A program made the translations under genes and the position numbers. From contig CATNEN010000024.1 in the NCBI GenBank assembly GCA_950097015.1, positions 496,001-560,000 on the forward strand: DNA of 64,000 bases, written 5' to 3'. The stretch is from Macrostomum hystrix (taxonomy: Eukaryota > Animalia > Platyhelminthes). Below the pieces are notes generated by a model. The model saw only the letters and a list, made by a program, of their open reading frames with translations. It was not told where the DNA came from and did not search any database. The first letter of the stretch is position 1. Every line of letters starts with the position of its first letter. Positions 1-30,350 of the stretch are shown piece after piece.

Positions 1-430
1 TTACATATAATTCCAGTAAACAGCACTATATTGCTTTTTTGCTACGATGCACTAGTAAAGCAAAATTACTAACATTTAACACAAAAATCTCTCGTGATTG
101 AAAAAATTGTCCCCTCCCCGGTTTTTGAAGGCAAGTCCGTGACTGTCTTCTATAGTTCTGTCCGATTAAAAATTGCACTACTGGTGTATTTTTTGGATTG
201 CAAAAATCAACCAAAGTCTGTTGCCCTACACGATCTGTTTCAATGTTTTAAATGTGATGCTTATGCAAGCTTATTTGTGATCAGTTATAATACACATGCA
301 CCAGCATGGACACTAGAGTTATAGGTATTTTATACCCGCTCTGATTACTGCACAATAACTTCATTTTCATATTTCGGCCGTTGATTAATTATTTTTACTA
401 CCTGATATAGACAACCTGTAATTTCAAAAT

Positions 431-776
431 CTACCTCAGTCTGCCAACCTCAGTCTGCCTACCTCAGACTGCCTACCTCAGACTGCCTATCTCAGTCTGC
501 CTACCTCAGACTGCCTACCTCAGTCTGCCTACCTCAGTCTGCCTAACTCAGTCTGCCTACCTCAGTCTGCCTACCTCAGACTGCCTACCTCAGTCTGCCT
601 ACCTCAGTCTGCCTACCTCAGTCTGCCTACCTCAGACTGCCTACCTCAGACTGCCTACCTCAGACTGCCTACCTCAGACTGCCTACCTCAGACTGCCTAC
701 CTCAGACTGCCTACCTCAGTCTGCCTACCTCAGACTGCCTACCTCAGACTGCCTATCTCAGACTGCCTACCTCAGT
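431..776. repeat. 14-bp minisatellite (CTCAG[T/A]CTGCCTAC), ~25 copies
   Basis: Tandem periodicity read directly. Confidence 0.95.
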
Positions 777-894
777 CAGTCTCCCTCTCGGAACCTGAAC
801 TGGGGCGAGGTCTTAAATATGACAATAGGTTCCCATATATATGACTTTAGACATTATAAAATGGAGTGCACAAAATGGCATAAAAAATTGCAAG

Positions 895-967
895 CGACCA
901 CGCCAGGACTCGAACCTGGAATCTTCTGATCCGTAGTCAGACGCGTTATCCATTGCGCCACGCGGCC
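895..967 (-). tRNA. tRNA-Arg-ACG: tRNA-Arg(ACG) copy 1
   Basis: 73-nt GGCCGCGTGGCGCAATGGATAACGCGTCTGACTACGGATCAGAAGATTCCAGGTTCGAGTCCTGGCGTGGTCG; cloverleaf, anticodon loop CT-ACG-GA, A/B boxes, T6 run downstream. Confidence 0.97.
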
Positions 968-1581
968 CTGACATGCCAGATCTAAATTCCTGCCGATATA
1001 CTGAGACTCCAGCGCTGACACTGTTTGATCTGCTGCGAGCTGCGGTAAAATGTGTAAGCACAATGGACTTTGGAATCGAATCCGCTTACTAGTCAGTACT
1101 CTTGTACTCAGTAGTCATGGCAAATTTCGAGCATCCAATATTACCATTTGACAATCCGATCTTCAAAAGTATATATAGTTTTGAAAAATCATATTTTTTG
1201 TCATTGGCAAGTTAGGTCTTCAGGGCACGAATACGAGAGCCAATTGTGCGACACACTATGATCTCTTACAGAGCTCATCGGAGTTGTTTTACTGACAACA
1301 AAAGCAGGATCAGATGTGCTAATCGGTCTATCTTTTGAGAATCTGTTGAGAACTAGCAATAATGAATCAATGAAGCCCAGTAGCACAAAACAGTACACTG
1401 TAGTAACTTTTAGAGGCCGTCTATGAAAATCAGTTGTGAAAAACATTTGCCTGTTTTGGATTAAAATAGATTTTTGAAAATTGGAATTGAAAAAGGAGAC
1501 ACCGAAAGTGTGCCAGCAGATCAAACTGTGCCAGCGCTGGAGTCTCAGAATATCGGCAGGAATTTAGATCTGGGATGTCAG

Positions 1582-1654
1582 GGCCGCGTGGCGCAATGGA
1601 TAACGCGTCTGACTACGGATCAGAAGATTCCAGGTTCGAGTCCTGGCGTGGTCG
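1582..1654 (+). tRNA. tRNA-Arg-ACG: tRNA-Arg(ACG) copy 2
   Basis: Identical 73-nt body; T4 downstream. Confidence 0.97.
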
Positions 1655-1996
1655 ATCAGTCTTTTGCATCAGAAGGTTTAGTTGCAGGAAATGCTTGAAT
1701 GTCCACTAGTTGATAGCTTGAGGGTGCATAAGTAGATGGCTTTAATGTCTATCAATAAGTAGCATGAGTGTTCATCAGTTGATACCTGATACGAGTTCGT
1801 AGTTCGGATATTGGTGATTTTGAAGACAGCGCAAGTTGCTCTATATTTTGAACCTTTGATTACGGGCTTCTCTGAATCAGTAAAAACGACATTCCGAAAC
1901 AAAACATATACTCGCAAATCTGGCGCGACAATTGTTAAAGAAGAAGGGTCCCCACCGCCAATGAATTCTTCACTCTACTTAAAAAAAGAATTCGAA

Positions 1997-2069
1997 CGAC
2001 CACGCCAGGACTCGAACCTGGAATCTTCTGATCCGTAGTCAGACGCGTTATCCATTGCGCCACGCGGCC
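1997..2069 (-). tRNA. tRNA-Arg-ACG: tRNA-Arg(ACG) copy 3
   Basis: Identical body; T7 downstream. Confidence 0.97.
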
Positions 2070-2716
2070 CTGACATGCCAGGTCTAAATTCTTGCTAATA
2101 TGCTGAGAGACTCCATGAGCGCTTAAATGAGGAACTGTTTGATCTGCTGCGAGCTGTGAGGACAATGGACTGAGTGTTACATTAGACATGAATCTGACGT
2201 ATTGCTCGAGAAGGGATATGGCAACACATTTTGGGACGTAAAATTCATGATGCAGACTGTTCTCAAGCATGGGAACACACGCTCACTGGCATATAATGGC
2301 TTCAGGTAAAAAAGTCTGAGGTCACAATTTGAGCTGTGTACTACGTGAGACATGAATATGATGGGCACTGCAACGACTGCAAGATCACTGCAAGCAGGAG
2401 AGTCCACAAGTTCAGCTGCGAAGCTGATCAAAGAGGAAACATTAACCCAGCTTTAGTATTGAGACGCTCACGGCTTTTACACCAATCAAAATGATATGAT
2501 TCTGCAGATGGATTATGTGTGTTCTGACTTAAGACACATCCTGATGGATGATGTGTCTTTCCCTTTTGTGCTGCTTTATCCTTTCTCAAACAGGTTTATG
2601 TCTCGATAAACAAAAGCTCATTGTGCTCACAGGTTTCATTGCAGCTCGCAGCAGATCAAACAGTGTCAGCGCTGGAGTCTCAGTATATCGGCACGAATTT
2701 TGATCTGGCATGTCAG

Positions 2717-2789
2717 GGCCGCGTGGCGCATTGGATAACGCGTCTGACTACGGATCAGAAGATTCCAGGTTCGAGTCCTGGCGTGGTCG
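2717..2789 (+). tRNA. tRNA-Arg-ACG: tRNA-Arg(ACG) copy 4 (A15T variant in D-loop/A box)
   Basis: GCGCATTGG instead of GCGCAATGG; otherwise identical. Confidence 0.9.
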
Positions 2790-3197
2790 CTTGAATTTTT
2801 TGTTTTTCAGCTGTTCATGCTGGAAGCTGTGCTCTTTGAGCTTTACGAATTGGCGTTTAGCGAGACGACTCATGTGGAGACCGTTTTTCACCTCTCGTGC
2901 CCACTGTTTAAAAGGTTAATTGTTGACTGTCTGAGTGGCATATGCTGATCGAGGGTCTCGATGTCAAGCTGGTTTGAAGACACGGTGATGAGGCGATCGT
3001 TGCAGTCATCGCCAGTTGATTAATCTCTGTCGATCAATGCTTTCGATCAGCAGCGTGCGTCGCAGAGGTCTTCTCTCGCTGTCGGTGCTGAATAATGATC
3101 AAAAACAACACGTGTCTTAATAAATCAACTAATAATTCCTTCCAGTGCTTGGAATGATAAAAAAGAATAGATGTTGTGTACAAAAACATAATCTGAG

Positions 3198-3270
3198 CGA
3201 CCACGCCAGGACTCGAACCTGGAATCTTCTGATCCGTAGTCAGACGCGTTATCCATTGCGCCACGCGGCC
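3198..3270 (-). tRNA. tRNA-Arg-ACG: tRNA-Arg(ACG) copy 5
   Basis: Identical body. Confidence 0.97.
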
Positions 3271-3802
3271 CTCTTCTTGCAAGCCGACGTTTCGTTGCCT
3301 CATTTCGATCAAGAATTGGGATATTTGCTCAACTGTCTTTTTTGGCCTCTGACAGTTTCTAGCTCGTATAGTACTTATAGCAGTGACTGCGCTGAAGTAC
3401 AAAAAATATAGGTGTGAGAGACTGTTGTGCGTTTCTGAACTTGCGATGAAGCGACAGTTTGGGCTCTAAAGTAACACACCAGAATTATTTTGCGAACTGT
3501 CAAAACTTGGAAAGATTTAAACAAATAAGCCAAAATACGTCATAACAACCTAGAAAATTTAAGGTCTCAACATTTGAGTCCGTAGCAAAGTTAAGCAAGA
3601 ATGTAACAATATTCCAAATTATCTGCAGTTGAATATTTTAATCAGCCTTTATCGTAGGCAAGAATGAGTCCTGCAGTTTTTATGTCACATAAAAGGTCAA
3701 ACCGGCGTCAAATGGTGACATAGGATGCATGAAATATTTAATGCAGTACTGACTAGTAAGTGGATTCAATTCCACAGTCCATTGTGCTCACATATTTCAC
3801 CG

Positions 3803-3849
3803 CAGCTCGCAGCAGATCAAACAGTGTCAGCGCTGGAGTCTCAGTATAT
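3803..3849 (+). promoter_or_regulatory. Conserved upstream element of class-A tRNA copies: CAGCTCGCAGCAGATCAAACAG (-75..-54) plus TATAT (-33..-29)
   Basis: The motif recurs upstream of copies 1,3,4,6,8,13,15,16 and partly 2; a regulatory role is inferred. Confidence 0.45.
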
Positions 3850-3877
3850 CGGCAGGAATTTAGATCTGGGATGTCAG

Positions 3878-3950
3878 GGCCGCGTGGCGCAATGGATAAC
3901 GCGTCTGACTACGGATCAGAAGATTCCAGGTTCGAGTCCTGGCGTGGTCG
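3878..3950 (+). tRNA. tRNA-Arg-ACG: tRNA-Arg(ACG) copy 6
   Basis: Identical body. Confidence 0.97.
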
Positions 3951-4397
3951 CTAGAAATTTTATTTTGTTTTAATTGACTCGAAATTTCCAATACTTCTCA
4001 GAAATTTTCATTTGATGCTTTAGTAATAATATAATAGCTATTTATGCTAAGGTAGAAGGTTAAGCTTGAGGTGTAATATTTGTATCTTACAAGCCAATCG
4101 ATCCACCTTGAAGCATGCGCATTCGAGCAAGGAAAATCCTGAAGCTCCATCATTGCCATCATTGTCAGGATGCGACTGCAAAGCTTGAGGCAATCGTGAG
4201 CTGACTGGCATTGAGCTGTAACTTAATGGCTGGTATAATTACCGATCTCAACGGTGCTTTGATTTAGCGACTTTACTGGAAACGTTATTCCGAAATAAAT
4301 TATGAGTACATACTGGCACATTTGGCTCAAGAATGGTTATAAAAAAGGTTCCACAAAAATAAATTATATTTCTTTTTCTCAGCTAAAAAAAGTCGAG

Positions 4398-4470
4398 CAA
4401 CCACGCCAGGACTCGAACCTGGAATCTTCTGATCCGTTGTCAGACGCGTTATCCATTGCGCCACCTGGCC
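4398..4470 (-). pseudogene. Degenerate tRNA-Arg(ACG) copy 7
   Basis: U33->A (loop CA-ACG-GA); acceptor stem GGCCAGG/CGTGGTT with a G6:G67 mismatch and C72T. Confidence 0.85.
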
Positions 4471-4987
4471 CTCTTCTGGCAAGCAGACCGAGCCTCGTTT
4501 GGATCAGGGACGGGAACATTGACTCAACTGTCTTTTACTTGGCCTCTAAAAGTCACTAATGTACTAATAGCAGTGGGAAAAAGTCGAAAAGTTGAGGTGT
4601 GAGAGACTGTCGTGAGTAGGGAACTGCCATGAGCCCAAACAATGAGGGCAGTGAAGTACAGAGCCTGAATTGTTGGGCAACCGAGAAAATTTGACTGTTT
4701 GTAACAAGCACTCCAACATTACCAAAAGATGTTAGAACATCTCTCAAGTTTTCATTCAGTTGTTCAGAAAAGCAGCAAATATTACAGTTATTACAGTTTA
4801 CTATCAAGAGAAAATAATTTTTATCCGTTTTCTTCTTGTCGTCAGCTAGATCGAGTTCAGCAGGTTTGAGTGTCATATAACAAGTAGTAAATCGTGCTCA
4901 CGTATTTCAGCCCAGCTCGCAGCAGATCAAACAGTGTCAGCGCTGGAGTCTCATTATATCGGCAGGAATTTAGATCTGGCATGTCAG

Positions 4988-5060
4988 GGCCGCGTGGCGC
5001 AATGGATAACGCGTCTGACTACGGATCAGAAGATTCCAGGTTCGAGTCCTGGCGTGGTCG
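4988..5060 (+). tRNA. tRNA-Arg-ACG: tRNA-Arg(ACG) copy 8
   Basis: Identical body. Confidence 0.97.
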
Positions 5061-5228
5061 ATCAGTCTTTTGCATCAGAAAGTTTAGTTCTGGAAATGCT
5101 TGAGTGTTGAAATGCTTAGTTGATATTGTACTGAGTCGCTAGTTACTAGGATTAGCATCTTGCTCCCACTCCTTGACTAGTTAGCCATCGCTGCTGTATG
5201 GTCTAACTTAATCTGTATCTCAAGGGAA

Positions 5229-5695
5229 GAGTATCCTTCAGTATATCGAGAACAACAGGACAGCTCTTGGATAAGAGTATCCTTCAGTATATCGAGAACA
5301 ACAGGACAGCTCTTGGATAAGAGTATCCTTCAGTATATCGAGAACAACAGGACAACTCTTGGATAAGAGTATCCTTCAGTATATCGAGAACAACAGGACA
5401 GCTCTTGGATAAGAGTATCCTTCAGTATATCGAGAACAACAGGACAGCTCTTGGATAAGAGTATCCTTCAGTATATCGAGAACAACAGGACAGCTCTTGG
5501 ATAAGAGTATCCTTCAGTATATCGAGAACAACAGGACAGCTCTTGGGTAAGAGTATCCTTCAGTATATCGAGAACAACAGGACAGCTCTTGGGTAAGAGT
5601 ATCCTTCAGTATATCGAGAACAACAGGACAGCTCTTGGGTAAGAGTATCCTTCAGTATATCGAGAACAACAGGACAGCTCTTGGGTAAGAGTATC
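5229..5695. repeat. 46-bp minisatellite x~10 (GAGTATCCTTCAGTATATCGAGAACAACAGGACAGCTCTTGGATAA)
   Basis: Period 46 (5229, 5275, ...); no spacers. Confidence 0.95.
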
Positions 5696-6290
5696 TAGAT
5701 ATTTAGGAGCATAGGACAGCTCTTGGATAAGGGCATTGGGAACAAGGACAACTCGTGGATATGAGTATCCTTCAGTAAAGTCGCATATAGGGACTTCTCT
5801 TTACATCCCCAGGTTCAGGATCTCTCTTGGATAAGAGGATAACTCTGCCATCAGTCTTAGCAGCTGTAGACCACTATAGGACAAGAGTGTCTCAACGATC
5901 CCCAGGTTCAGGATCTCTCTTGGATAAGGGAACACTTCCTTCATAGTCAACTTTCGTCGGTGTGGAAAACTGTTCACAGACAATGGTCTCCGAGTCTCGA
6001 GTTTCAGATATTACTTATTTTTCCAATAATAGGTCTAAGGCGAGAGAAGTCATAAGAGAGAGAGTAGGGTCATTCGACCCTACTCACTATGGCGACAGCA
6101 ACCCTACCATTTTCAGGAGTTTATCAGTTTATTTCAGGAGTTTTTTAAAGGTATTTTTAAGGAGCTTGTCTTCAAATTAAAGTAATATTCACCTCTCACT
6201 CCAAATTTTGAACCTCAAACTTACATCCGCCCTTAAATCTGGTTTTCGCTTACCAATGAGTTTTATTAACTAAGCGGAGATACCACAATA

Positions 6291-9200
6291 GATAGACTGT
6301 CCATCAGTTGATAGCTTGAGTGTCCATCAGTTAATAGCTTGAGTGTCCATCAGTTGATAGCTAGACTGTCCATCAGTTAATAGCTTGAGTGTCCATCAGT
6401 TGATAGCTTGAGTGTCCATCAGTTAATAGCTTGAGTGTCCATCAGTTAATAGCTTGAGTGTCCATCAGTTGATAGCTTGAGTGTCCATCAGTTGATAGCT
6501 TGAGTGTCCATCAGTTAATAGCTTGAGTGTCCATCAGTTAATAGCTTGAGTGTCCATCAGTTGTTAGCTTGAGTGTCCATCAGTTGATAGCTAGACTGTC
6601 CATCAGTTAATAGCTTGAGTGTCCATCAGTTGATAGCTTGAGTGTCCATCAGTTGATAGCTTGAGTGTCCATCAGTTGATAGCTTGAGTGTCCATCAGTT
6701 GATAGCTAGACTGTCCATCAGTTGATAGCTTGAGTGTCCATCAGTTGATAGCTTGAGTGTCCATCAGTTGATAGCTTGAGTGTCCATCAGTTGATAGCTT
6801 GAGTGTCCATCAGTTGATAGCTTGAGTGTCCATCAGTTGATAGCTTGAGTGTCCATCAGTTAATAGCTTGAGTGTCCATCAGTTGATAGCTAGACTGTCC
6901 ATCAGTTAATAGCTTGAGTGTCCATCAGTTGATAGCTTGAGTGTCCATCAGTTAATAGCTTGAGTGTCCATCAGTTGATAGCTTTAGTGTCCATCAGTTG
7001 ATAGCTTGAGTGTCCATCAGTTGATAGCTTGAGTGTCCATCAGTTGATGCTTGAGTGTCCATCAGTTGATAGCTTGAGTGTCCATCAGTTGATAGCTTGA
7101 GTGTCCATCAGTTGATGCTTGAGTGTCCATCAGTTGATAGCTAGACTGTCCATCAGTTGATGCTTGAGTGTCCATCAGTTGATAGCTTGAGTGTCCATCA
7201 GTTGATAGCTTGAGTGTCCATCAGTTGATAGCTTGAGTGTCCATCAGTTGATAGCTTGAGTGTCCATCAGTTGATAGCTTGAGTGTCCATCAGTTGATAG
7301 CTTGACTGTCCATCAGTTGATAGCTAGACTGTCCATCAGTTGATGCTTGAGTGTCCATCAGTTGATAGCTAGACTGTCCATCAGTTGATGCTTGAGTGTC
7401 CATCAGTTGATAGCTTGAGTGTCCATCAGTTGATAGCTTGAGTGTCCATCAGTTGATAGCTTGAGTGTCCATCAGTTGATAGCTTGAGTGTCCATCAGTT
7501 GATAGCTTGAGTGTCCATCAGTTGATAGCTTGAGTGTCCATCAGTTGATAGCTTGAGTGTCCATCAGTTGATGCTTGAGTCTCCATCAGTTGATAGCTTG
7601 AGTGTCCATCAGTTGATAGCTTGAGTGTCCATCAGTTGATGCTTGAGTGTCCATCAGTTGATGCTTGAGTGTCCATCAGTTGATAGCTTGAGTGTCCATC
7701 AGTTGATGCTTGAGTGTCCATCAGTTGATGCTTGAGTGTCCATCAGTTGATAGCTTGAGTGTCCATCAGTTGATAGCTTGAGTGTCCATCAGTTGATGCT
7801 TGAGTGTCCATCAGTTGATAGCTTGAGTGTCCATCAGTTGATGCTTGAGTGTCCATCAGTTGATAGCTAGACTGTCCATCAGTTGATAGCTTGAGTGTCC
7901 ATCAGTTGATAGCTTGAGTGTCCATCAGTTGATGCTTGAGTGTCCATCAGTTGATAGCTAGACTGTCCATCAGTTGATAGCTTGAGTGTCCATCAGTTGA
8001 TAGCTTGAGTGTCCATCAGTTGATAGCTTGAGTGTCCATCAGTTGATAGCTTGAGTGTCCATCAGTTGATAGCTTGAGTGTCCATCAGTTAATAGCTTGA
8101 GTGTCCATCAGTTGATAGCTTGAGTGTCCATCAGTTGATAGCTTGAGTGTCCATCAGTTGATAGCTTGAGTGTCCATCAGTTGATAGCTTGAGTGTCCAT
8201 CAGTTGATAGCTAGACTGTCCATCAGTTAATAGCTTGAGTGTCCATCAGTTGATAGCTTGAGTGTCCATCAGTTGATAGCTTGAGTGTCCATCAGTTGAT
8301 AGCTTTAGTGTCCATCAGTTGATAGCTAGACTGTCCATCAGTTAATAGCTTGAGTGTCCATCAGTTGATAGCTTGAGTGTCCATCAGTTGATAGCTTGAG
8401 TGTCCATCAGTTGATAGCTTTAGTGTCCATCAGTTGATAGCTAGACTGTCCATCAGTTAATAGCTTGAGTGTCCATCAGTTGATAGCTTTAGTGTCCATC
8501 AGTTGATAGCTAGACTGTCCATCAGTTGATAGCTTGAGTGTCCATCAGTTGATGCTTGAGTGTCCATCAGTTGATGCTTTAGTGTCCATCAGTTGATAGC
8601 TTTAGTGTCCATCAGTTGATAGCTAGACTGTCCATCAGTTAATAGCTTGAGTGTCCATCAGTTGATAGCTTGAGTGTCCATCAGTTGATAGCTTGAGTGT
8701 CCATCAGTTGATAGCTTGAGTGTCCATCAGTTGATAGCTTGAGTGTCCATCAGTTGATAGCTTGAGTGTCCATCAGTTGATAGCTAGACTGTCCATCAGT
8801 TAATAGCTTGAGTGTCCATCAGTTGATGCTTGAGTGTCCATCAGTTGATAGCTAGACTGTCCATCAGTTGATAGCTTGAGTGTCCATCAGTTGATGCTTG
8901 AGTGTCCATCAGTTGATGCTTTAGTGTCCATCAGTTGATAGCTTTAGTGTCCATCAGTTGATAGCTAGACTGTCCATCAGTTAATAGCTTGAGTGTCCAT
9001 CAGTTGATGCTTGAGTGTCCATCAGTTGATGGCTTGAGTGTCCATCAGTTGATAGCTTGAGTGTCCATCAGTTGATAGCTTGAGTGTCCATCAGTTGATA
9101 GCTTGAGTGTCCATCAGTTGATAGCTAGACTGTCCATCAGTTAATAGCTTGAGTGTCCATCAGTTGATGCTTGAGTGTCCATCAGTTGATAGCTAGACTG

Positions 9201-9765
9201 TCCATCAGTTGATAGCTTGAGTGTCCATCAGTTGATGCTTGAGTGTCCATCAGTTGATAGCTTGAGTGTCCATCAGTTGATGCTTGAGTGTCCATCAGTT
9301 GATAGCTTGACTGTCCATCAGTTGATAGCTTGAGTGTCCATCAGTTGATAGCTTGAGTGTCCATCAGTTGATGCTTGAGTGTCCATCAGTTGATGCTTGA
9401 TTGTCCATCAGTTGATGCTTGAGTGTCCATCAGTTGATAGCTTGAGTGTCCATCAGTTGATAGCTTGAGTGTCCATCAGTTGATAGCTTGAGTGTCCATC
9501 AGTTAATAGCTTGAGTGTCCATCAGTTAATAGCTTGAGTGTCCATCAGTTGATAGCTTGAGTGTCCATCAGTTGATAGCTTGAGTGTCCATCAGTTGATA
9601 GCTTGAGTGTCCATCAGTTAATAGCTTGAGTGTCCATCAGTTAATAGCTTGAGTGTCCATCAGTTGATAGCTTGAGTGTCCATCAGTTGATAGCTTGAGT
9701 GTCCATCAGTTGATAGCTTGAGTGTCCATCAGTTAATAGCTTGAGTGTCCATCAGTTGATAGCTT
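6291..9765 (+). repeat. 23-bp satellite (GTGTCCATCAGTTGATAGCTTGA), ~150 copies, with 22-bp and substitution variants
   Basis: Period 23; recurrent variants TTAATAGC, CTAGACTGTCC, GATGCTT, TTTAGTG. Confidence 0.98.
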
Positions 9766-9948
9766 ATAGTTTGGAAAACGGTGATTCTGAAGACAGTGCA
9801 TGCGAGTTGCACTATATGAAGAGCCTTTGATTAACGGCTCAACAAGTCACTGAAAATAATAAATATACTCGCACATCTGAAGCCAAAAGAAGGAGAGTTC
9901 ACATTGAAAATTAATTTTATTTTTCTCTATTATAAAAAGGAAATCCAA

Positions 9949-10021
9949 CGACCACGCCAGGACTCGAACCTGGAATCTTCTGATCCGTAGTCAGACGCGT
10001 TATCCATTGCGCCACGCGGCC
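9949..10021 (-). tRNA. tRNA-Arg-ACG: tRNA-Arg(ACG) copy 9
   Basis: Identical body; T5 downstream. Confidence 0.97.
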
Positions 10022-10605
10022 CTCCGCCTGCTCAATCTCTGCTTCTTACGTTTCAACTAATTTACTTTGATGTTTGGTCAGCAGGATTGAATTCCCTTTA
10101 AAACTACTGCCAGAAGCATGTAGCGCATCGAAACTAATTTGGTTCCATTTTATTTGAACCTTCAACTTTCAGGTTCCTCAATCCCTTAAGCTGAAGCCTC
10201 CTTAAAATCCTAATAACATGTTTGAGCTAATCAATCACCCAATGACAGGTAAGGACTGTCCCTAGGTAACACCTTTCATAATGTCATTCTGGTCATCAGC
10301 TTGCCCAGTGCGGGTTCGCCAGACAGTTTTAATTTCGCTCATTATTGAAGGCTCAATCAGCCCATGCTGCAGCCCTGCTCAGCTGAGGCGGTTCACAACA
10401 GAGCTGACCAACTACTTAGACCAGATTCTGCATTGATCTTTGAGAGCATTCTTTCGAATATATTCCGTTCTCAACTGCCTTCTATTTAATATATTTTCTC
10501 TCCTCACCTATTAAAGCAAAAAAAATTTTGGAGGCTGACTAAATCACAGTTCTGTGAATATCCAAGTCCCAGATAGAAAAGAAAGGACATGAAAGGTTCT
10601 TAGAG

Positions 10606-10678
10606 GGCCGCGTGGCGCAATGGATAACGCGTCTGACTACGGATCAGAAGATTCCAGGTTCGAGTCCTGGCGTGGTCG
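10606..10678 (+). tRNA. tRNA-Arg-ACG: tRNA-Arg(ACG) copy 10
   Basis: Identical body. Confidence 0.97.
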
Positions 10679-11031
10679 CTCGAGTTATATATTTTGTTGT
10701 TCATAAAGTATTTTTTTATCATTCCAGTCACTGAAAAGAATTATTAGTTGATTTGTTCAGACACGTGGTGTTTTTCTTCAATGGTTGATCAACAGCGATT
10801 AAGCAACTGGCGATGTATGCGACGATCGCCTCCGTAGCGTGTCTCAAATCAGCTTGACATCGAGACTCTCGACCAGCATGTCACAGTCAGACAGTCTAAA
10901 ATCAACCTATAAAACTATAGTAGGACAGATGAAAAATACGGTCAGCACACGAGTCGACTCGCTAAAATCCAATTTGTAACGCTCAGAGAGCACAGCTTCC
11001 AGAAACAACAGTTAAAGACAAAAAATGCAAG

Positions 11032-11104
11032 CGACCACGCCAGGACTCGAACCTGGAATCTTCTGATCCGTAGTCAGACGCGTTATCCATTGCGCCACGC
11101 GGCC
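11032..11104 (-). tRNA. tRNA-Arg-ACG: tRNA-Arg(ACG) copy 11
   Basis: Identical body. Confidence 0.97.
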
Positions 11105-11417
11105 CTCTTCTGGCAAGCCGATCGAGTCTCTTTTCAAACAGGAACAGGGATATTTGCTCAAATGTCTTTTATTTAGCCTCTAAATGTTACCATTGTAATC
11201 ATGACAGTGATTTTGCAATCATTTTAAATCAGTTGGCCTTGGCGTTTCTTTTTTGGGTCAAGAATCTGGAACCTGCATGGTTTATTTATTTGGTTAAACA
11301 GTGTTATTCTCTGTAACAATTGATGTCTTCGTTCTCAATCGGTCATGTTGGCAGCCATGCCGGGGTGTTTAATCGTGCAATATTAATATTAGAATAACAA
11401 GAGCTTCAATCATTTTC

Positions 11418-11875
11418 AATTGTCTTCGTCGACTTCAGGAAAGCTTTTGATTCTGTCAGCAGGTCCGTTATTGTGGCAGTTCTGGTTCAACACGGAGTCC
11501 CGCCGCTGATCATCAAGTCGGTGATGGACTTCTATAGCAGCTCGCACGTCTTCGTCAACACCAGTGATCGCCTAACTGAGGAATTCCAAATGACATGCGG
11601 AGTCCTCCAAGGCGACACGCTGCCTACCTTCCTATTTGTGGTTGCGGCTAACTTTGTGTTGCGACAGGCGATCAGCGAAGAGGACTGCTTCATCGTTGCA
11701 CGTAGGTGCAACTCTCGCTACCGGGAAGAGCGTCTCGGCTGCCTTGCGAAGGCTGTCGACATCGCGCTCCTTTGCCATGACCTCGAGGCGGCTCAGGGAG
11801 CCATTCATCGCCTGGCGCTGGAGAACGCTAAATATGGACTGAAGATCAACGCCACCAAGACCGCAACAAGACTTT
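11418..11875 (+). mobile_element. Decayed non-LTR retrotransposon reverse transcriptase fragment (RTE-like)
   Basis: IVFVDFRKAFDSV, GVLQGDTL, GLKINATKT motifs; catalytic YADD degraded to KAVD. Confidence 0.88.
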
Positions 11876-12188
11876 CTATGATGACCTGACGTCGATTGGC
11901 CTGACGCCTGTGACGCCTTGCCTTGACTCCATGGCCTACAAGCTGCGTGTGCTCGCTGCTTAAGCAGTGTTTGTTATCATTGTTAATAATAGTCATATTT
12001 TTATTATTATACCAACAATAGTGCAGCCGCACTTATCTCGGGAGAGTCTTCGATGAATTGAGCCCGAGTCGAAATTCGTGTTCGAGTCAACTAAATATAC
12101 TCGTATATGGGCACTTGTGTCGTGGAGTCGAGTGTATAGAGTGGAGTTTTTCAGCTGGAGATTCTCTAGTCTGAAAAGCAGCACAAAT

Positions 12189-12432
12189 AATATAGGTGAT
12201 TGGAACAGAGCATTGGTTTGAGTATGTTGTGGCTATTAATATAGGTGATTGGAACAGAGCATTGGTTTGAGTATGTTGTGGCTATTAATATAGGTGATTG
12301 GAACAGAGCATTGGTTTGAGTATGTTGTGGCTATTAATATAGGTGATTGGAACAGAGCATTGGTTTGAGTATGTTGTGGCTATTAATATAGGTGATTGGA
12401 ACAGAGCATTGGTTTGAGTATGTTGTGGCTAT
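12189..12432. repeat. 49-bp minisatellite x5
   Basis: AATATAGGTGATTGGAACAGAGCATTGGTTTGAGTATGTTGTGGCTATT in tandem. Confidence 0.95.
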
Positions 12433-12952
12433 TCTAGGGCTGCCCAGGTGCTGGATTTGAGAATCTAGATAAAACGAGAATCTCAATTTCTTGGACTTGG
12501 CTAAAGTAAAAAAGATGTGTAAGAGGTGTAAGAGACTGTCGTGAGTTTCTGAACTTGCGATGAACCACCAATTAAAGGCAATGAAGTACAGACCCAGAAT
12601 GATTAAGCAAACGGAAAAACATGACCGCTTGTAAACAAGCACTCCAACATACGCCATATATATAAAGCTAGAACATTTGACGTCTGAACATTTCAGTCCG
12701 TCTGAAGTTTTAAGGCATATGAGATTCTTTTAAATAATCTGCCTATAATTTTCTGACTCATTTCCTTCTTCTCTTCAGCTTGAACGACCAATGCTTTCGA
12801 TCAGCAGCGTGCGTCGCAGAGGTCTTCTATCGCTGTCGGTGCTGAAGAATGATGAAAAAAACCACGTGTCTTCTAAATCAACTAATAGTTCGTTCCATTG
12901 ACTGGAAGTGAGAAAAAGGAATATTTTATGAACAAAAAATATATGACTCGAG

Positions 12953-13025
12953 CGACCACGCCAGGACTCGAACCTGGAATCTTCTGATCCGTAGTCAGAC
13001 GCGTTATCCATTGCGCCACGCGGCC
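12953..13025 (-). tRNA. tRNA-Arg-ACG: tRNA-Arg(ACG) copy 12
   Basis: Identical body. Confidence 0.97.
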
Positions 13026-13246
13026 ATCTTCTGGCAAGCCGACGTTTCGTTGCCTCGTTTCGATCAAGAATTCGGATATTTGCTTAACTGTCTTTTTTAG
13101 CCTCTGAAAGTTTCTAGCTCGTGGTTTGATTTTTATTTTGATTTTGATTAAAGCTAGCACTACTCATAGCAGTGACTGCGCAGAATTACAAAACATATAG
13201 TTGTGATAGACTGTCGTGAGTTTCTGAACTTGCGCTGAAGCGACTG

Positions 13247-13261
13247 TTGCGCCACGTGGCC
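13247..13261 (-). pseudogene. 15-nt 5' remnant of a tRNA-Arg (GGCCACGTGGCGCAA) that keeps a copy-10-like upstream flank
   Basis: 13262-13510 is the reverse complement of the copy-10 upstream flank (~10350-10605); the tRNA body is deleted after nt 15. Confidence 0.75.
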
Positions 13262-13524
13262 CTCTGAGAACCTTTCATGTCCTTTCTTTTATATCTGGGA
13301 CTAGGATATTCACTCAACTGTCATTTAGTCAGCCTCCGAAACTTTCTATTGTTTGAATAGATAGCGAAAAGAAATCGACTAGCGAGGCATTTGAGAACGG
13401 AATATATTCAAAAGAATGCTCTCAAAGATCAATGCAGAATTTGCTCTAAGTAGTTGGAAAGCTCTGTTATGAACCACCTCAGCTGATCAGGGCTGCAGCA
13501 TGGGCTGAGACATAAAAAAAGCTA

Positions 13525-13985
13525 TGAAGATAGACTTTAAAGCTATGAACTGATAGACTTTAAAGCTATAAACTGATAGACTTTAAAGCTATGAACTGAT
13601 AGACTTTAAAGCTATGAACTGATAGACTTTAAAGCTATGAACTGATAGACTTTAAAGCTATGAACTGATAGACTTTAAAGCTATGAACTGATAGACTTTA
13701 AAGCTATAAACTGATAGACTTTAAAGCTATGAACTGATAGACTTTAAAGCTATGAACTGATAGACTTTAAAGCTATGAACTGATAGACTTTAAAGCTATG
13801 AACTGATAGACTTTAAAGCTATGAACTGATAGACTTTAAAGCTATCAACTGATGGACACTCAAGCTATGAACTGATGGTCACTCAAGCTATCAACTGATG
13901 GTCACTCAAGCTATCAACAGATGGTCGCTCAAGCTATGAACTGATGGTCACTCAAGCTATCAACAGATGGTCGCTCAAGCTATCG
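13525..13985 (-). repeat. 23-bp satellite in opposite orientation; variant CTTTAAAGCTATGAACTGATAGA grading into the reverse complement of the 6.3-9.8 kb monomer
   Basis: TCAAGCTATCAACTGATGGACAC-like units at 13845-13980. Confidence 0.93.
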
Positions 13986-14149
13986 TCAGATCGACATTCA
14001 AGCAGCGATGCGCGATATTAAAAAATACACCTAAGCTTAACCTTCTACCTTAGCATAAATAGCTATTATATTATTACTAAAGCATCAAATGAAAATTTCT
14101 GAGAAGTATTGGAAATTCCGAGTCAATTAAAACAAAACGAAATTGCAAA

Positions 14150-14222
14150 CGACCACGCCAGGACTCGAACCTGGAATCTTCTGATCCGTAGTCAGACGCG
14201 TTATCCATTGCGCCACGCGGCC
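14150..14222 (-). tRNA. tRNA-Arg-ACG: tRNA-Arg(ACG) copy 13
   Basis: Identical body. Confidence 0.97.
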
Positions 14223-14827
14223 CTGACATCCCAGATCTAAATTCCTGCCGATATACTGAGACTCCAGCGCTGACACTGTTTGATCTGCTGCGAGCTGCGG
14301 TGAAATATGTGAGCACTATGGACTGTGGAATTGAATCCACTTACTAGTCATTACTCAATTACATATTTCGAGCATCCTATATCAATATTTGACGCCGGTT
14401 TGACCTTTTATGTGACACTAAAACTGCAGGACTCATTCTTGCCTACGATAAAGGCTGATTAAAACATTCAACTGCAGATAATTTGGAAGATTGTTACATT
14501 CTTGCTTAACTTTGCTACGGACTCAAATGTTGAGACCTTAAATTTTCTAGGTTGTTATGACGTATTTTTGCTTATTTATTTAAATCTTTCCAAGTTTTCC
14601 AGTTCGCAAAATAATTCAGGTGTGTTACTTTAGAGCCCAAACTGTCGCTTCATCGCAAGTTCAGAAACGCACAACAGTCTCTCACACCTATCTTTTTGTA
14701 CTTCAGCGCAGTCACTGCTATAAGTACTATACGAGCTAGAAACTTTCAGAGGCCAAAAAAGACAGTTGAGCAAACATCCCAATTCTTGATCGAAATGAGG
14801 CAACGAAACGTCGGCTTGCAAGAAGAG

Positions 14828-14900
14828 GGCCGCGTGGCGCAATGGATAACGCGTCTGACTACGGATCAGAAGATTCCAGGTTCGAGTCCTGGCGTGGTCG
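14828..14900 (+). tRNA. tRNA-Arg-ACG: tRNA-Arg(ACG) copy 14
   Basis: Identical body. Confidence 0.97.
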
Positions 14901-15308
14901 CTCAGATTATGTTTTTGTACACAAAATCTATTCTTTTTTATCATTCCAAGCACTGGAAGGAATTATTAGTTGATTTATTAAGACACGTGGTGTTTTTTAT
15001 CATTATTCAGCACCGACAGCGAGAGAAGACCTCTGCGACGCACGCTGCTGATCGAAAGCATTGATCGACAGAGATTAATCAACTGGCGATGACTGCAACG
15101 ATCGCCTCATCACCGTGTCTTCAAACCAGCTTGACATCGAGACCCTCGATCAGCATATGCCACTCAGACAGTCAACAATTCACCTTTTAAACAGTGGGCA
15201 CGAGAGGTGAAAAACGGTCTCCACATGAGTCGTCTCGCTAAACGCCAATTCGTAAAGCTCAAAGAGCACAGCTTCCAGCATGAACAGCTGAAAAACAAAA
15301 AATTCAAG

Positions 15309-15381
15309 CGACCACGCCAGGACTCGAACCTGGAATCTTCTGATCCGTAGTCAGACGCGTTATCCATTGCGCCACGCGGCC
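15309..15381 (-). tRNA. tRNA-Arg-ACG: tRNA-Arg(ACG) copy 15
   Basis: Identical body. Confidence 0.97.
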
Positions 15382-16035
15382 CTGACATCCCAGATCTAAA
15401 TTCGTGCCGATATACTGAGACTCCAGCGCTGACACTGTTTGATCTGCTGCGAGCTGCAATGAAACCTGTGAGCACAATGAGCTTTTGTTTATCGAGACAT
15501 AAACCTGCTGGAGAAAGGATAAAGCAGCACAGAAGGGAAAGACACATCATCCATCAGGATGTGTCTTAAGTCAGAACACATGCACATAATGCATCTGCAG
15601 AATCATATCATTTTGATTGGTGTAAAAGCCGACGTGAGCGTCTCAATACTAAAGCTGGGTTAATGTTTCCTCTTTGATCAGCTTCGCAGCTGAACTTGTG
15701 GACTCTCCTGCTTGCAGTGATCTTGCAGTCGTTGCAGTGCCCATCATATTTATGTCTCACGTAGTACACAGCTCTCATTGTGCCCTCAGACTTTTTTACC
15801 TGAAGCCATTATATGCCAGTGAGCGTGTGTTCCCATGCTTGAGAACAGTCTGCATCATGAATTTTACGTCCCAAAATGTGTTGCCATATCCCTTCTCGAG
15901 CAATACGTCAGATTCATGTCTAATGTAACACTCAGTCCATTGTCCTCACAGCTCGCAGCAGATCAAACAGTTCCTCATTTAAGCGCTCATGGAGTCTCTC
16001 AGCATATGAGCAAGAATTTAGACCTGGCATGTCAG

Positions 16036-16108
16036 GGCCGCGTGGCGCAATGGATAACGCGTCTGACTACGGATCAGAAGATTCCAGGTTCGAGTCCTGG
16101 CGTGGTCG
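16036..16108 (+). tRNA. tRNA-Arg-ACG: tRNA-Arg(ACG) copy 16
   Basis: Identical body. Confidence 0.97.
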
Positions 16109-18414
16109 ATTATATTTTGCTTTTGCTTTTATTAGGTAATTTTTCCGAGCTCGACTTTAAACCTAATAACCTAGCTATATTTATAGGGTCCTATGTAAAA
16201 TTGAATTGTTTTTCACAATTTCAGAATTCTGATCGAGAGTCACTGATGTAGGCCGGTTGATGAAGGCTGACTGAGGGAGATTGACTGATGGATACTGGCT
16301 GAGGAAGATTATTTGCCAAGAATAACCAAACTCAGAATGGCCCCATTCTGCGGAAGACTGACTGAATTTTGATAGAGATAACAACCCCAGGCAATATGTG
16401 AAGAAATATGAAATGAAAAAGCAGTCTAAGTGTTATAGCAATGTCAATTAATAATATTTACTCGCTAAAATTAATCATTTTACAGGAAATTGTTTTAAAC
16501 TTAAAAAATTATATTTGAAGCGTTCGAAAGTCATTTTTTCTTAGAATGAATAAGTAGCTTTTAATGTCTACTTGATTAGCCTAGTTCGTCGTTGCTAAAT
16601 GCTAATTGTACTGTTGCGGATATTGCTCCTACAATTTCAAATCCTTGCCTTATATTATAAGATCATGATATAGTTCTATCTTGTATAGCGCATTAGACGT
16701 TTTGGGTCTTTTCGACTGCTGCCATCTCATCTGCTATAAACATGTCTTTAAAAGAAACTTCGTACAACCTCGTCTGCCGTCAGGACAATTTAAAACAAAT
16801 TCGTCTGCTTCGGCTTGCCTAAAATTTTTGCAAGTGGTCTCCCTTATCTATGGCAGGGCGTCAGTGCACGCAAAACAGAAAGTAGGGCCAATGTACAAAT
16901 CCGTTCAAATTCGTCTGAGAAAACGAATAATAATCTTGGTTAGGCCTAAAAATCTTGCTTATCTTAAATCTGCTCCGCACACTGGCATGTATACTGGGAT
17001 GAAACCATTTTCTCTCGTTTCAGTTTAGGACAAGTTGGCCAACTCGTCTGCTCATTAATTTCGTTTGTATTTCCTACAAATAAGTCAACTCATCTATTGG
17101 CAGCCGAGATAGTGGCACACTAAGAGACTGGAATCCAACTTTTGTATGTTTACAGAATGGTTGCTGATATTACCTATATACCATAGGCTAGTAATAATGA
17201 AAACTGTCAATAAATTTTACTTTACTGATAAACAACCTCAGATTCAGCTTTATTTTGTTACTATCATGTAGACAGAAATTTCCCTGCCATGCACAGAGAC
17301 TAGGTGACCAGGCAGATGCTTTGATTATGTCTATATTGCCAGTGGTTCTGGTACAGCATCCAAATGTGGCCTTGTCATGAAATTGAGCTTAGGGACCTTT
17401 ATGCGATAGGCAAATGTGTTAGACTGCTCTGCCACTTACCCCCTTTGTAGGATATTTGTGGCTTTGATCTAGTTACATTTAGCATTTATTGATCCAATTC
17501 TTTTTGTTTATTTATAATGCAAACTTTAAGCCTACACTCTGCCTCTATATCTCCACTTGCCTAGCTCATATAATGTACTAGCTATGGTCCTTGCATCATC
17601 TATGACCATTTTAATGAAAATTCTGGCTATGCCACCAATTTAGTGACAACTAACTTAAATTTATTTTGTGTTGCTCTATATATACTACTATGGTATTTAT
17701 AGCCAGATTGCGCTGTTTTATCACTACATTAGCAGAAGCTATAGCTATTGTCTGCACAATTTTCAGACATGTCTCTGGTTGAAGTTTAATAATCTCTAAT
17801 CACTAAAGAGGGCAAGTTTTTAATGTCAAATTGAATAGCTAGATTGTCAATAGAAATGAGCCTTTTGTTAGGCATAGGTGGCCTGTTTTAGAAAGACAGT
17901 AAATTTTTTTCTATTGTGTGAAATGTGGAACATTTTGGAACCCTTTTAATGTAGGTTTCAATTTTTGTAAACTAGCTGCAATTTAGATTCAAATAGGACT
18001 AATGAAATACAGTTTAACAGAAAAAGTGCAGAATACTGAAGTCATGATTAATATATTGATGATAATAATATATCTTTCTAATATATGTTAATAGTTAAAA
18101 TAAGTTGATTTTCTCATAAAAGAACACATATTTAAGAAAGCATTTAGATTTATTTTGAATTTTGTTCATCAGGTTACATTTTTTCATTTTTCCTATTAAT
18201 AAAACTAAAAACCCTGCATTTTAGAATTTTTTGGCTTCTTCAGCAATTGCTTAATTCCTTTCATTTGAAACAAATTATAATGATTCTTTTTATCTAAATA
18301 TTGCAGCAGCATTGGCATGCAAAGACTCAAGAAAGTAGACTAGAACTTTTACAAATTATGCCGTTGAAAGCTAGCTATACAAACTAGGGGTCCAGGCTAG
18401 GTAAATAAAAAAGC

Positions 18415-30031: not shown

Positions 30032-30350
30032 TACAGGTAGAGGTTGTAGCCTAGTGGTTAGGGCGTCGGACTAACGACTTGAAGGTCGGGGGTTCGAATC
30101 CCGACTCCACTGAAACAATTTGTGTCCTTTAGCAAGACACTTAACTCTGCATTGCTTCAGTTCACCCAGCTGTTAAATGGGTACCAGCATCAGCTGGGAT
30201 AATTGAAGGTGGGTGTGGCGTCCCCCCAGTCCATGGACTGAACAGCTGTACGCAGCCTTCAGATGCGCCGCGCAATAGCTGCGGTTGTGCTGTCGGCTGC
30301 ACATCTGGCTCGATTAGGGCAGGTGTAATCAATTATTATTATTATTATTA
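30032..30350 (+). mobile_element. tRNA-derived SINE family A with CORE-like domain, full length
   Basis: A box TAGCCTAGTGG, B box GGTTCGAATCC, CORE-like TGTGTCCTTTAGCAAGACACTTAAC...CAGTT...CTGTTAAATGGG, (ATT)n tail, 12-bp TSD TTAACCTGCTAT. Confidence 0.9.

Follow-up and report, generated by a model that had tools for sequence, protein, structure and literature searches.

An alternating tRNA-Arg(ACG) gene cluster in Macrostomum hystrix and its probable growth by local duplication

The tRNA-Arg(ACG) genes and their layout

The window analyzed here, a stretch of 64,000 nucleotides of Macrostomum hystrix DNA, contains 16 genes for tRNA-Arg(ACG) within 894-16108, on which ARAGORN and the Rfam model RF00005 agree. 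All 16, with the anticodon ACG, pass the Rfam gathering threshold for tRNAs (29 bits), and 14 of them share one sequence over all 73 nt, with a score of 58.8 bits each, which confirms the numbers of the original prediction; the other two score 56.7 and 44.1 bits. Copy 4 (2717-2789) differs by a single D-loop substitution. Copy 7 (4398-4470) carries 4 changes, among which are U33>A and one that leaves a 6-67 mismatch (44.1 versus 58.8 bits); it is probably decaying. A further, 17th copy is located 5.3 kb upstream of the window (C24:490662). The locus lies at 0.5 Mb in the interior of a 7.1-Mb contig.

The genes display the sequence characteristics of eukaryotic nuclear tRNA genes (Pol III type 2), i.e., a cloverleaf, the anticodon, A and B boxes, and a terminator, and in no copy is the gene followed by an encoded CCA. 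The A box TGGCGCAATGG and the B box GGTTCGAGTCC are present in every array copy. All 17 copies are followed by a run of at least four T, which begins after 7-17 nt (background frequency 13.6%), and these terminators are kept although the downstream flanks belong to about 10 unrelated families. When a common TATA-like box or upstream promoter motif was sought across all copies, none was found, the sole common feature being an “AG” at -2/-1, which occurs in 11 of 15 independent upstream flanks. A search for additional genes hidden in the spacers revealed none, with neither a further Rfam family in 1-17500 at E values up to 0.1 nor an open reading frame longer than 138 aa. Judged by their sequence, the array copies look like working tRNA-Arg genes.

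In the whole genome, 24 copies of Arg(ACG) exist at an identity of at least 96%, of which 17 (about 70%) reside in this cluster and seven are dispersed singletons. These gene calls, the census and the terminators were observed directly. The tRNA-Arg(ACG) is expected to decode CGU, CGC, and CGA after editing of A34 to I, and with 17 of 24 gene copies at one locus, a role of the cluster in tRNA-Arg dosage is plausible. The features of the locus are as follows; A and B denote modules of upstream flank, and spacers are named after the copies on either side.

431-775: 14-bp tandem array, next to the gene cluster but not within it
895-967, minus strand: copy 1, canonical sequence; upstream module A at 968-1100
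1582-1654, plus strand: copy 2; upstream module A core at 1514-1581
1655-1996: convergent spacer 2>3, unexpanded paralogue of spacer 8>9, with about 4 degenerate 23-bp proto-monomers at 1693-1787
1997-4081: left arm of the inverted duplication, holding copies 3-6; its outer edge is the 3' end of copy 3
1997-2069, minus strand: copy 3
2717-2789, plus strand: copy 4
3198-3270, minus strand: copy 5
3878-3950, plus strand: copy 6
4398-4470, minus strand: copy 7, variant with 4 changes
4988-5060, plus strand: copy 8; upstream module A, downstream family the same as that of copy 2
5226-6287: copy of a dispersed element, inserted in spacer 8>9 and carrying a 46-bp minisatellite (5227-5731)
6298-9765, plus strand: 23-bp satellite, about 152 copies
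9949-10021, minus strand: copy 9; downstream flank paralogous to that of copy 3
10357-10780, plus strand: copy 10 (10606-10678) and its flanks, the inner-layer mirror image of copy 12 and its flanks
11032-11104, minus strand: copy 11, at the palindrome center; mosaic flanks, B-type upstream and copy 4-like downstream
12188-12433: very young 49-bp tandem array, its 5 copies 100% identical
12850-13508, minus strand: copy 12 (12953-13025) and its flanks, mirrored in the inner layer by copy 10; in addition, a direct paralogue of copy 5 and its flanks
13518-14003, minus strand: short inverted 23-bp satellite, about 80% identical to 6298-9765
14020-16108: right arm of the inverted duplication, holding copies 13-16; bounded on the outside by the 3' end of copy 16
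14150-14222, minus strand: copy 13
14828-14900, plus strand: copy 14
15309-15381, minus strand: copy 15
16036-16108, plus strand: copy 16

From copy 1 to copy 16 the strands read - + - + - + - + - + - - - + - +. The gene calls thereby bear out the strict alternation claimed earlier for copies 1-11; overall, 13 of 15 junctions alternate (P = 0.0037 under independent coin flips, although the copies are not independent). Two classes of spacer had been described as well, and they exist, but the lengths given for them (about 600-700 bp head-to-head and 350-500 bp tail-to-tail) are to be replaced by measured ones of 517-654 and 342-447 bp, respectively. Spacer lengths are rather regular despite unrelated sequences, which is unexpected under pure neutral turnover. 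If a homogeneous tDNA cluster is taken to consist of genes of one isoacceptor family with distances below 1000 nt between neighbors, copies 1-8, 9-11, and 13-16 form three such clusters, and gaps of 4.9, 1.8, and 1.1 kb part these and copy 12.

It had been suggested to check whether other isoacceptors form similar alternating arrays. Two further arrays were sampled, one of seven Arg-TCG genes and one of four copies of an intron-containing tRNA, and both are parallel; the Arg-TCG array likewise combines a conserved proximal core with unrelated spacers. In the genome search with RF00005, 63 of about 23,100 candidates were scored. A B-box pattern has 5,911 matches in the genome (100 of which were listed) versus 531 for a control, and many of these matches are tRNA-like repeats, not genes.

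Flanking modules and tandem repeats

Upstream of the genes, a module A of 68-133 bp is found at copies 1, 2, 4, 6, 8, 13, and 15, with a variant at copies 3 and 16, and a module B at copies 5, 12, and 14, with a distant form at copies 7 and 11. The downstream flanks of array copies group into five families. The original prediction of diverged flanks needs correcting, since the flanks sort into a few local families. The spacers cannot be aligned with each other beyond the short proximal modules. Between copies with unalignable spacers, module A is 90-95% identical, and this identity may require gene conversion as a contributor.

Neither module A nor module B was found anywhere else in the 220-Mb genome. 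As the modules are confined to this locus, amplification would have been local and not by transposition. One might otherwise suppose that a mobile element carried a tRNA and its upstream module along as cargo and inserted repeatedly, now in one orientation and now in the other, since a unit of 140-206 bp (module A plus tRNA) recurs in both orientations in unrelated spacers and the genome is rich in tRNA-like repeats. However, no terminal repeats or target duplications were seen, and the conserved part is located upstream of the Pol III start and hence is not copyable through a tRNA transcript. We consider such cargo scarcely credible; the uniqueness of the modules to the locus rules out a mobile-element origin of module A plus tRNA.

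Five tandem arrays occur in or near the cluster. Those with units of 14, 46, 23, and 49 bp had all been predicted, although the 14-bp array lies outside the span that had been claimed, and an inverted relative of the 23-bp satellite (13518-14003) has to be added. The 46-bp array arrived with the dispersed element, and the 23-bp satellite grew after pair duplication from a 4-monomer seed that is still visible in the paralogous spacer 2>3. The share of sequence made up of tandem repeats is 31% in the array and 35% elsewhere in the window; in 18 other loci of the genome it ranges from 0 to 56% (21-56% in loci of 7-10 kb). Since the cover of the array resembles the genome background, the satellites are not integral to the tRNA array, and the idea of a joint tRNA/satellite domain is abandoned in favor of secondary insertions and expansions. 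A derivation of the short spacers from decayed minisatellites is unsupported; TRF at score 30 gave no meaningful matches in 800-5200.

Palindrome, duplication history and constraint on the gene bodies

The region 1997-4081 matches 16108-14020 in inverted orientation with 97.4% identity over 2092 bp. With arms of 2085 and 2089 bp and a spacer of 9.9 kb, this is a genomic palindrome or inverted duplication, and it ends on the outside precisely where a tRNA gene has its 3' end (copies 3 and 16). Further layers inside are mirror-collinear, namely the two 23-bp satellites, 10357-10605 versus 13508-13262, and 10680-10780 versus 12951-12850. On the basis of this homology, 1997-16108 as a whole is one degenerate palindrome. 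The earlier proposal of a fold-back origin is sustained insofar as inverted duplication did shape the array, the 2.1-kb inverted duplicate being part of the larger mirror-collinear structure. Identity declines from 97% in the outer arms to 84-86% in the inner layers. To account for this gradient by a single event, one would have to make additional assumptions, for example arm-to-arm conversion or two events.

The genome is rich in repeats and was assembled with canu from PacBio data (PMC10468722), so that the mirror structure, together with surplus gene copies, might be a product of chimeric or palindromic long reads. However, besides a divergence of 2.5%, the arms show 5 indels, and they are 10 kb apart, whereas palindromes from read chimeras are near perfect and lack a spacer. 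The internal position of the locus, 0.5 Mb into a 7.1-Mb contig, and the distinct flanks of most copies also argue against an artefact, which we regard as very unlikely.

Older direct paralogy is discernible between units of inverted pairs, [2>3] resembling [8>9] and [5<6] resembling [7<8]. Spacers 2>3 and 8>9 are collinear (E = 4e-36), and 5<6 and 7<8 match in their centers (z = 8.8). Spacer 4>5 is the same as spacer 10>11 in inverted orientation, whereas the upstream modules pair copy 5 with copy 11. A flip of the spacer between inverted tRNAs would yield exactly this pattern, and in this one case such a flip between two inverted copies apparently took place. The alternation would have been inherited from a duplicated inverted-pair unit and not built independently gene by gene; we infer that the layout is a product of duplication history and was not selected for each gene.

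Between the two arms, 44 of 1790 flank sites are different, and 1 of 292 body sites, where 7.2 differences would be expected (P = 0.006). The gene bodies therefore change at a lower rate than their flanks. Of the seven dispersed singletons on other contigs, five are 100% identical to array copies although their flanks are unrelated, which indicates that purifying selection is enough and that conversion is not needed for identical bodies. The original prediction had left the choice between selection and conversion open; constraint on the bodies relative to the flanks is now evident, and conversion has become dispensable for their identity.

The homology map and the difference in rate between bodies and flanks are direct observations, from which the growth history is reconstructed. 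We consider it likely that this is a locally amplified Pol III tRNA-Arg(ACG) cluster that arose by repeated copying of pairs and a large inverted duplication, and whose bodies are kept by purifying selection. An inverted gene pair would have been copied repeatedly, both directly and in inversion, before one large inverted duplication turned 1997-16108 into a degenerate palindrome. Identical 73-bp bodies in inverted orientation might serve as junctions for further rearrangement, as the palindrome edge, the flipped spacer and the mosaic flanks suggest. Purifying selection would keep the bodies and short promoter-proximal and terminator flanks identical, while spacers would turn over fast by minisatellite expansion and mobile-element insertion, as throughout the M. 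hystrix genome.

Concerted evolution, in which ectopic gene conversion seeded in the identical body, rather than selection, homogenizes bodies and proximal flanks, is a tentative alternative to which we give clearly less credence. It would be in line with the variable end of module A (-68, about -100, or -133), which nevertheless always abuts the tRNA, with the mosaic flanks in the array, with a small patch just 3' of copy 13 that is like copy 1 and unlike its mirror partner copy 6, and with an array-specific variant common to the Arg(TCG) array copies and distinct from singletons. However, the dispersed Arg(ACG) singletons are identical despite unrelated flanks, so selection alone suffices, the private substitutions of copies 4 and 7 remain unerased, and the tract pattern fits small duplications followed by deletions equally well.

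Two more far-reaching readings concern the layout itself. In one, template switching or recombination in the inverted 73-bp bodies would form a self-propagating rearrangement engine that causes fold-back duplications, flips and a growing alternating lattice, with the regular spacing kept as a Pol III/TFIIIC-dense boundary or as a source of hairpin small RNAs; this seems unlikely. In the other, the alternating array would be kept as a putative chromatin or insulator element, in which TFIIIC/TFIIIB sites in both orientations separate domains and in which layout and spacing are selected. In yeasts and mammals, clusters of tRNA genes are known as barriers, spacer lengths at this locus are fairly regular despite unrelated sequences, and the array occupies a gene-poor, repeat-rich stretch. 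Nevertheless, no sequence feature demands such a role, the duplication history would fully account for the alternation, and the other sampled tRNA arrays of the genome are parallel, which makes this reading quite improbable.

Relation to known systems

The cluster as such is of an ordinary kind, with a tidy yet explainable layout, and would mean new biology only if this layout were conserved or linked to chromatin. Most genes for the main CGN-decoding arginine tRNA are gathered at one locus, and the spacers in which tRNA arrays are embedded evolve very fast and are rich in minisatellites. The locus might serve as a natural example of how identical small inverted genes become junctions for palindrome formation, and of how selection on a 73-bp gene and a few flanking bases can be read against neutral spacer turnover.

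In the arrays of Entamoeba, nearly identical units follow each other head-to-tail, and a unit usually comprises several different tRNAs. As in Entamoeba histolytica, tRNA genes of M. hystrix are interleaved with short tandem repeats, but here spacers are mutually unrelated, orientation alternates and the tandem repeats are secondary and at background density. The analogy drawn earlier therefore fails on the defining near-identical head-to-tail unit. Short inverted repeats can give rise to palindromes and inverted duplications through fold-back or template switching, for example in the ODIRA model. The M. hystrix palindrome shares with such models the kilobase mirror arms, the unique center and a junction at a pre-existing inverted repeat (here a tRNA gene), whereas its outer-to-inner identity gradient is not a feature of them. 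Centromeric tRNA genes of Schizosaccharomyces pombe sit as barriers in inverted imr repeats, and mammalian tDNA insulators are known as well. Here, too, several tRNA genes are placed symmetrically in inverted repeats amid repeat-rich DNA, the likeness being one of gene layout.

A literature search for tRNA arrays of alternating orientation returned nothing relevant. The M. hystrix genome paper does not describe nuclear tRNA gene organization (PMC10468722), of which the present analysis offers a first look. Homogeneous tDNA clusters of eukaryotes originate by local duplication and vary between lineages, and most of their adjacent pairs are parallel (Bermudez-Santana et al., 2010; PMC2888827). 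The M. hystrix cluster resembles them in having neighbors of the same isoacceptor less than 1 kb apart, but differs in that 13 of its 15 junctions are antiparallel, in its unbroken alternation over 11 genes, and in holding about 70% of the copies of its isoacceptor.

The tRNA-Arg(ACG) gene set

Sixteen tRNA-Arg(ACG) genes are located at 894-16108 and constitute the sole tRNA calls by ARAGORN in the 64-kb window; all of them (16/16) are supported by the Rfam tRNA model. Fourteen copies have an identical 73-nt body and score 58.8 bits, copy 4 (numbering from left to right) shows a single change, in the D-loop, and scores 56.7 bits, and copy 7, with four changes including U33>A, scores 44.1 bits. 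The strand order is - + - + - + - + - + - - - + - +, alternating strictly in copies 1-11, with head-to-head spacers of 517-654 bp and tail-to-tail spacers of 342-447 bp. ARAGORN, the Rfam model, and the printed sequences therefore confirm the original prediction of 16 genes, 14 of them identical over 73 nt, with alternation in copies 1-11. A weak tRNA-model match at 30040-30109 (+), with 31.3 bits barely over the gathering threshold and without an ARAGORN call, may be a degenerate tRNA or the head of a tRNA-like repeat.

Searching the whole genome (220,453,370 bp, 42 contigs) with the 73-nt gene identifies 24 copies at an identity of at least 96%. The window (C24:496001-560000) contains 16 of them, and a further copy lies 5.3 kb upstream of it (L001:4662-4735), so that the locus comprises 17/24 genomic copies; the other seven are singletons on contigs C38, C29, C24 (three), C11, and C7. 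The M. hystrix genome paper mentions tRNAs for the mitochondrion only (PMC10468722).

Standard A and B boxes are present in the gene body. A run of at least four T begins 7-17 nt past the gene in 17/17 cluster copies (background frequency 13.6%), and the downstream flanks of these copies form about ten unrelated families. In 11/15 independent upstream flanks (window copies and genomic loci L005-L011), 'AG' occupies positions -2/-1, directly before the mature 5' end, which hints at a leader context that is favoured for processing or for transcription initiation. Within 1-17500, neither an Rfam family besides tRNA nor an ORF of more than 138 aa was found.

Palindrome and older duplications

Self-comparison reveals that 1997-4081 and 14020-16108 are inverted duplicates, 97.4% identical over 2092 bp, so that copies 13-16 mirror copies 3-6. 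On its outer side, each arm ends exactly at a tRNA 3' end (1997 and 16108), and the sequence outside is unrelated. Four layers of inner inverted matches are collinear with the arms and, together with this 2.1-kb duplicate, bear out the fold-back type of build proposed earlier. We infer that 1997-16108 is a single degenerate palindrome centred near 10.8-12.85 kb. The outer arms are more alike than the inner layers, and this reading needs arm-to-arm conversion or a second event.

Inner layers of the palindrome and segments without mirror partner
6288-9765 and 14003-13519: inverted, ~80%, 23-bp satellite
10357-10605 and 13508-13262: inverted, 86%
copy 10 and copy 12: inverted, mirror-collinear
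10680-10780 and 12951-12850: inverted, 84%
4082-6297: no mirror partner, with copies 7 and 8
9766-10356: no mirror partner, with copy 9
13026-13248: no mirror partner, module B (one of two sequence families just upstream of array tRNA genes)

In the palindrome centre, a 49-bp array (12188-12433) consists of exactly five copies that are 100% identical, evidently a very recent expansion. The assembly was made from PacBio reads with canu (PMC10468722), and it is unlikely that the locus is an assembly artefact, because 10 kb separates the two arms, their sequences have diverged from each other, and both are situated inside a 7-Mb contig.

Older duplications are recognizable as well. The tail-to-tail spacer 2>3 (1655-1996) and spacer 8>9 align collinearly (1655-1702 versus 5061-5107, 92%; 1693-1996 versus 9670-9948, 68%, E = 4e-36). 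Matches in direct orientation also link the centres of the head-to-head spacers 5<6 and 7<8 (z = 8.8), and likewise the flanks downstream of copies 3 and 7. Reversed spacer 10>11 corresponds to spacer 4>5 (80%), although by its upstream module copy 5 goes with copy 11; in this one case, the mosaic would be explained if a pair was duplicated directly and its spacer then inverted by recombination between two inverted tRNA genes. Outside the duplication layers, spacers are mutually unalignable. In a whole-genome search, modules A (68-133 bp) and B are confined to the array locus, which indicates local amplification and rules out amplification by transposition.

Orientation and likeness of the genes

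Alternation occurs at 13/15 junctions, for which P = 0.0037 if coin flips were independent, but the genes here are not independent. Four of them (arguably five) arose as mirror copies, and pair units were copied whole; given one founding inverted pair, unit duplication would make alternation automatic. Alternation is therefore real and non-random, yet no evidence of function, and the clean layout is explained by duplication history.

The idea that other isoacceptors form similar alternating arrays finds no support in the two other arrays sampled from this genome, both of which are parallel. In a survey of 74 eukaryotes, parallel tRNA pairs are the rule and exceptions are lineage-specific (PMC2888827). 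On C38 (20168238-20180984; L003, L004), seven tRNA-Arg(TCG) genes lie in direct orientation, with one inverted 7.5 kb further. Their unit consists of ~35 conserved bases upstream, the gene, and ~10 bases downstream, and the spacers are unrelated, almost every one containing a different minisatellite; this array is thus built like the tRNA-Arg(ACG) array, with a conserved proximal core and unrelated spacers. On C1 (1650126-1651984; L015:5126-6984), there are four intron-containing genes of 81-94 nt in direct orientation, probably Tyr-GTA, three of which ARAGORN skips in bacterial mode. The B-box pattern GGTTCRANTCC has 5,911 genome-wide matches versus 531 for the reversed control; among the matches listed, many are not tRNA genes but tRNA-like heads of dispersed repeats (e.g., L016:3080-3400 and L016:5180-5420).

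The arm flanks differ at 44/1790 aligned sites and by five indels, whereas the four tRNA bodies in the arms differ at 1/292 sites versus 7.2 expected (P = 0.006). Purifying selection suffices, since 5/7 dispersed singletons show 100% identity to the array genes in spite of entirely unrelated flanking sequence. Gene conversion may contribute to the likeness of copies within the array: the A tracts vary in their end distances and always abut the gene, and the tRNA-Arg(TCG) array copies have in common A37 and a compensated acceptor-stem variant, an array-specific state absent from the two TCG singletons (L012, L013), which have G37. From the earlier alternative of selection or conversion on tRNA bodies, slower change of the bodies is retained, with selection as a sufficient cause and conversion as a possible addition.

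Satellites and comparison with known systems

The four tandem arrays described originally are all present, and a fifth (13518-14003) is related to the 23-bp satellite in inverted orientation. The share of sequence in tandem repeats with a period of at least 6 is 31% within the array, 35% in the window's other 48 kb, and 0-56% at 18 other genomic loci chosen mostly around tRNA or B-box matches (21-56% in 7-10 kb loci). The paralogous spacer 2>3 contains, at 1693-1787, a counterpart of ~four degenerate monomers of the 23-bp satellite, which thus expanded after the pair duplication. The 46-bp array together with the adjoining 560 bp constitutes one copy of a dispersed element. Three other loci contain related elements with the same ends, one of them with a 46-bp array inside.

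Members of the dispersed element family
window 5226-6287
L019:2376-3052
L020:2689-4181
L021:2277-2776

Background density together with later expansion and insertion indicates that the satellites are later additions, not a component of the array, and an integral tRNA/satellite domain is not supported. The element family is non-autonomous and conserved at its ends, its copies differ in whether a 46-bp minisatellite lies within, and it is a route spreading minisatellites in the M. hystrix genome. Within 16109-64000, ~35 separate minisatellite arrays with periods of 11-69 bp account for the cover, and several have CTGAGGGAG or GACACGGGAGAG in common with arrays on other contigs.

Entamoeba-type arrays require near-identical head-to-tail units, and the M. 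hystrix locus is therefore of a different kind. By definition, it is a homogeneous tDNA cluster and also a genomic palindrome.
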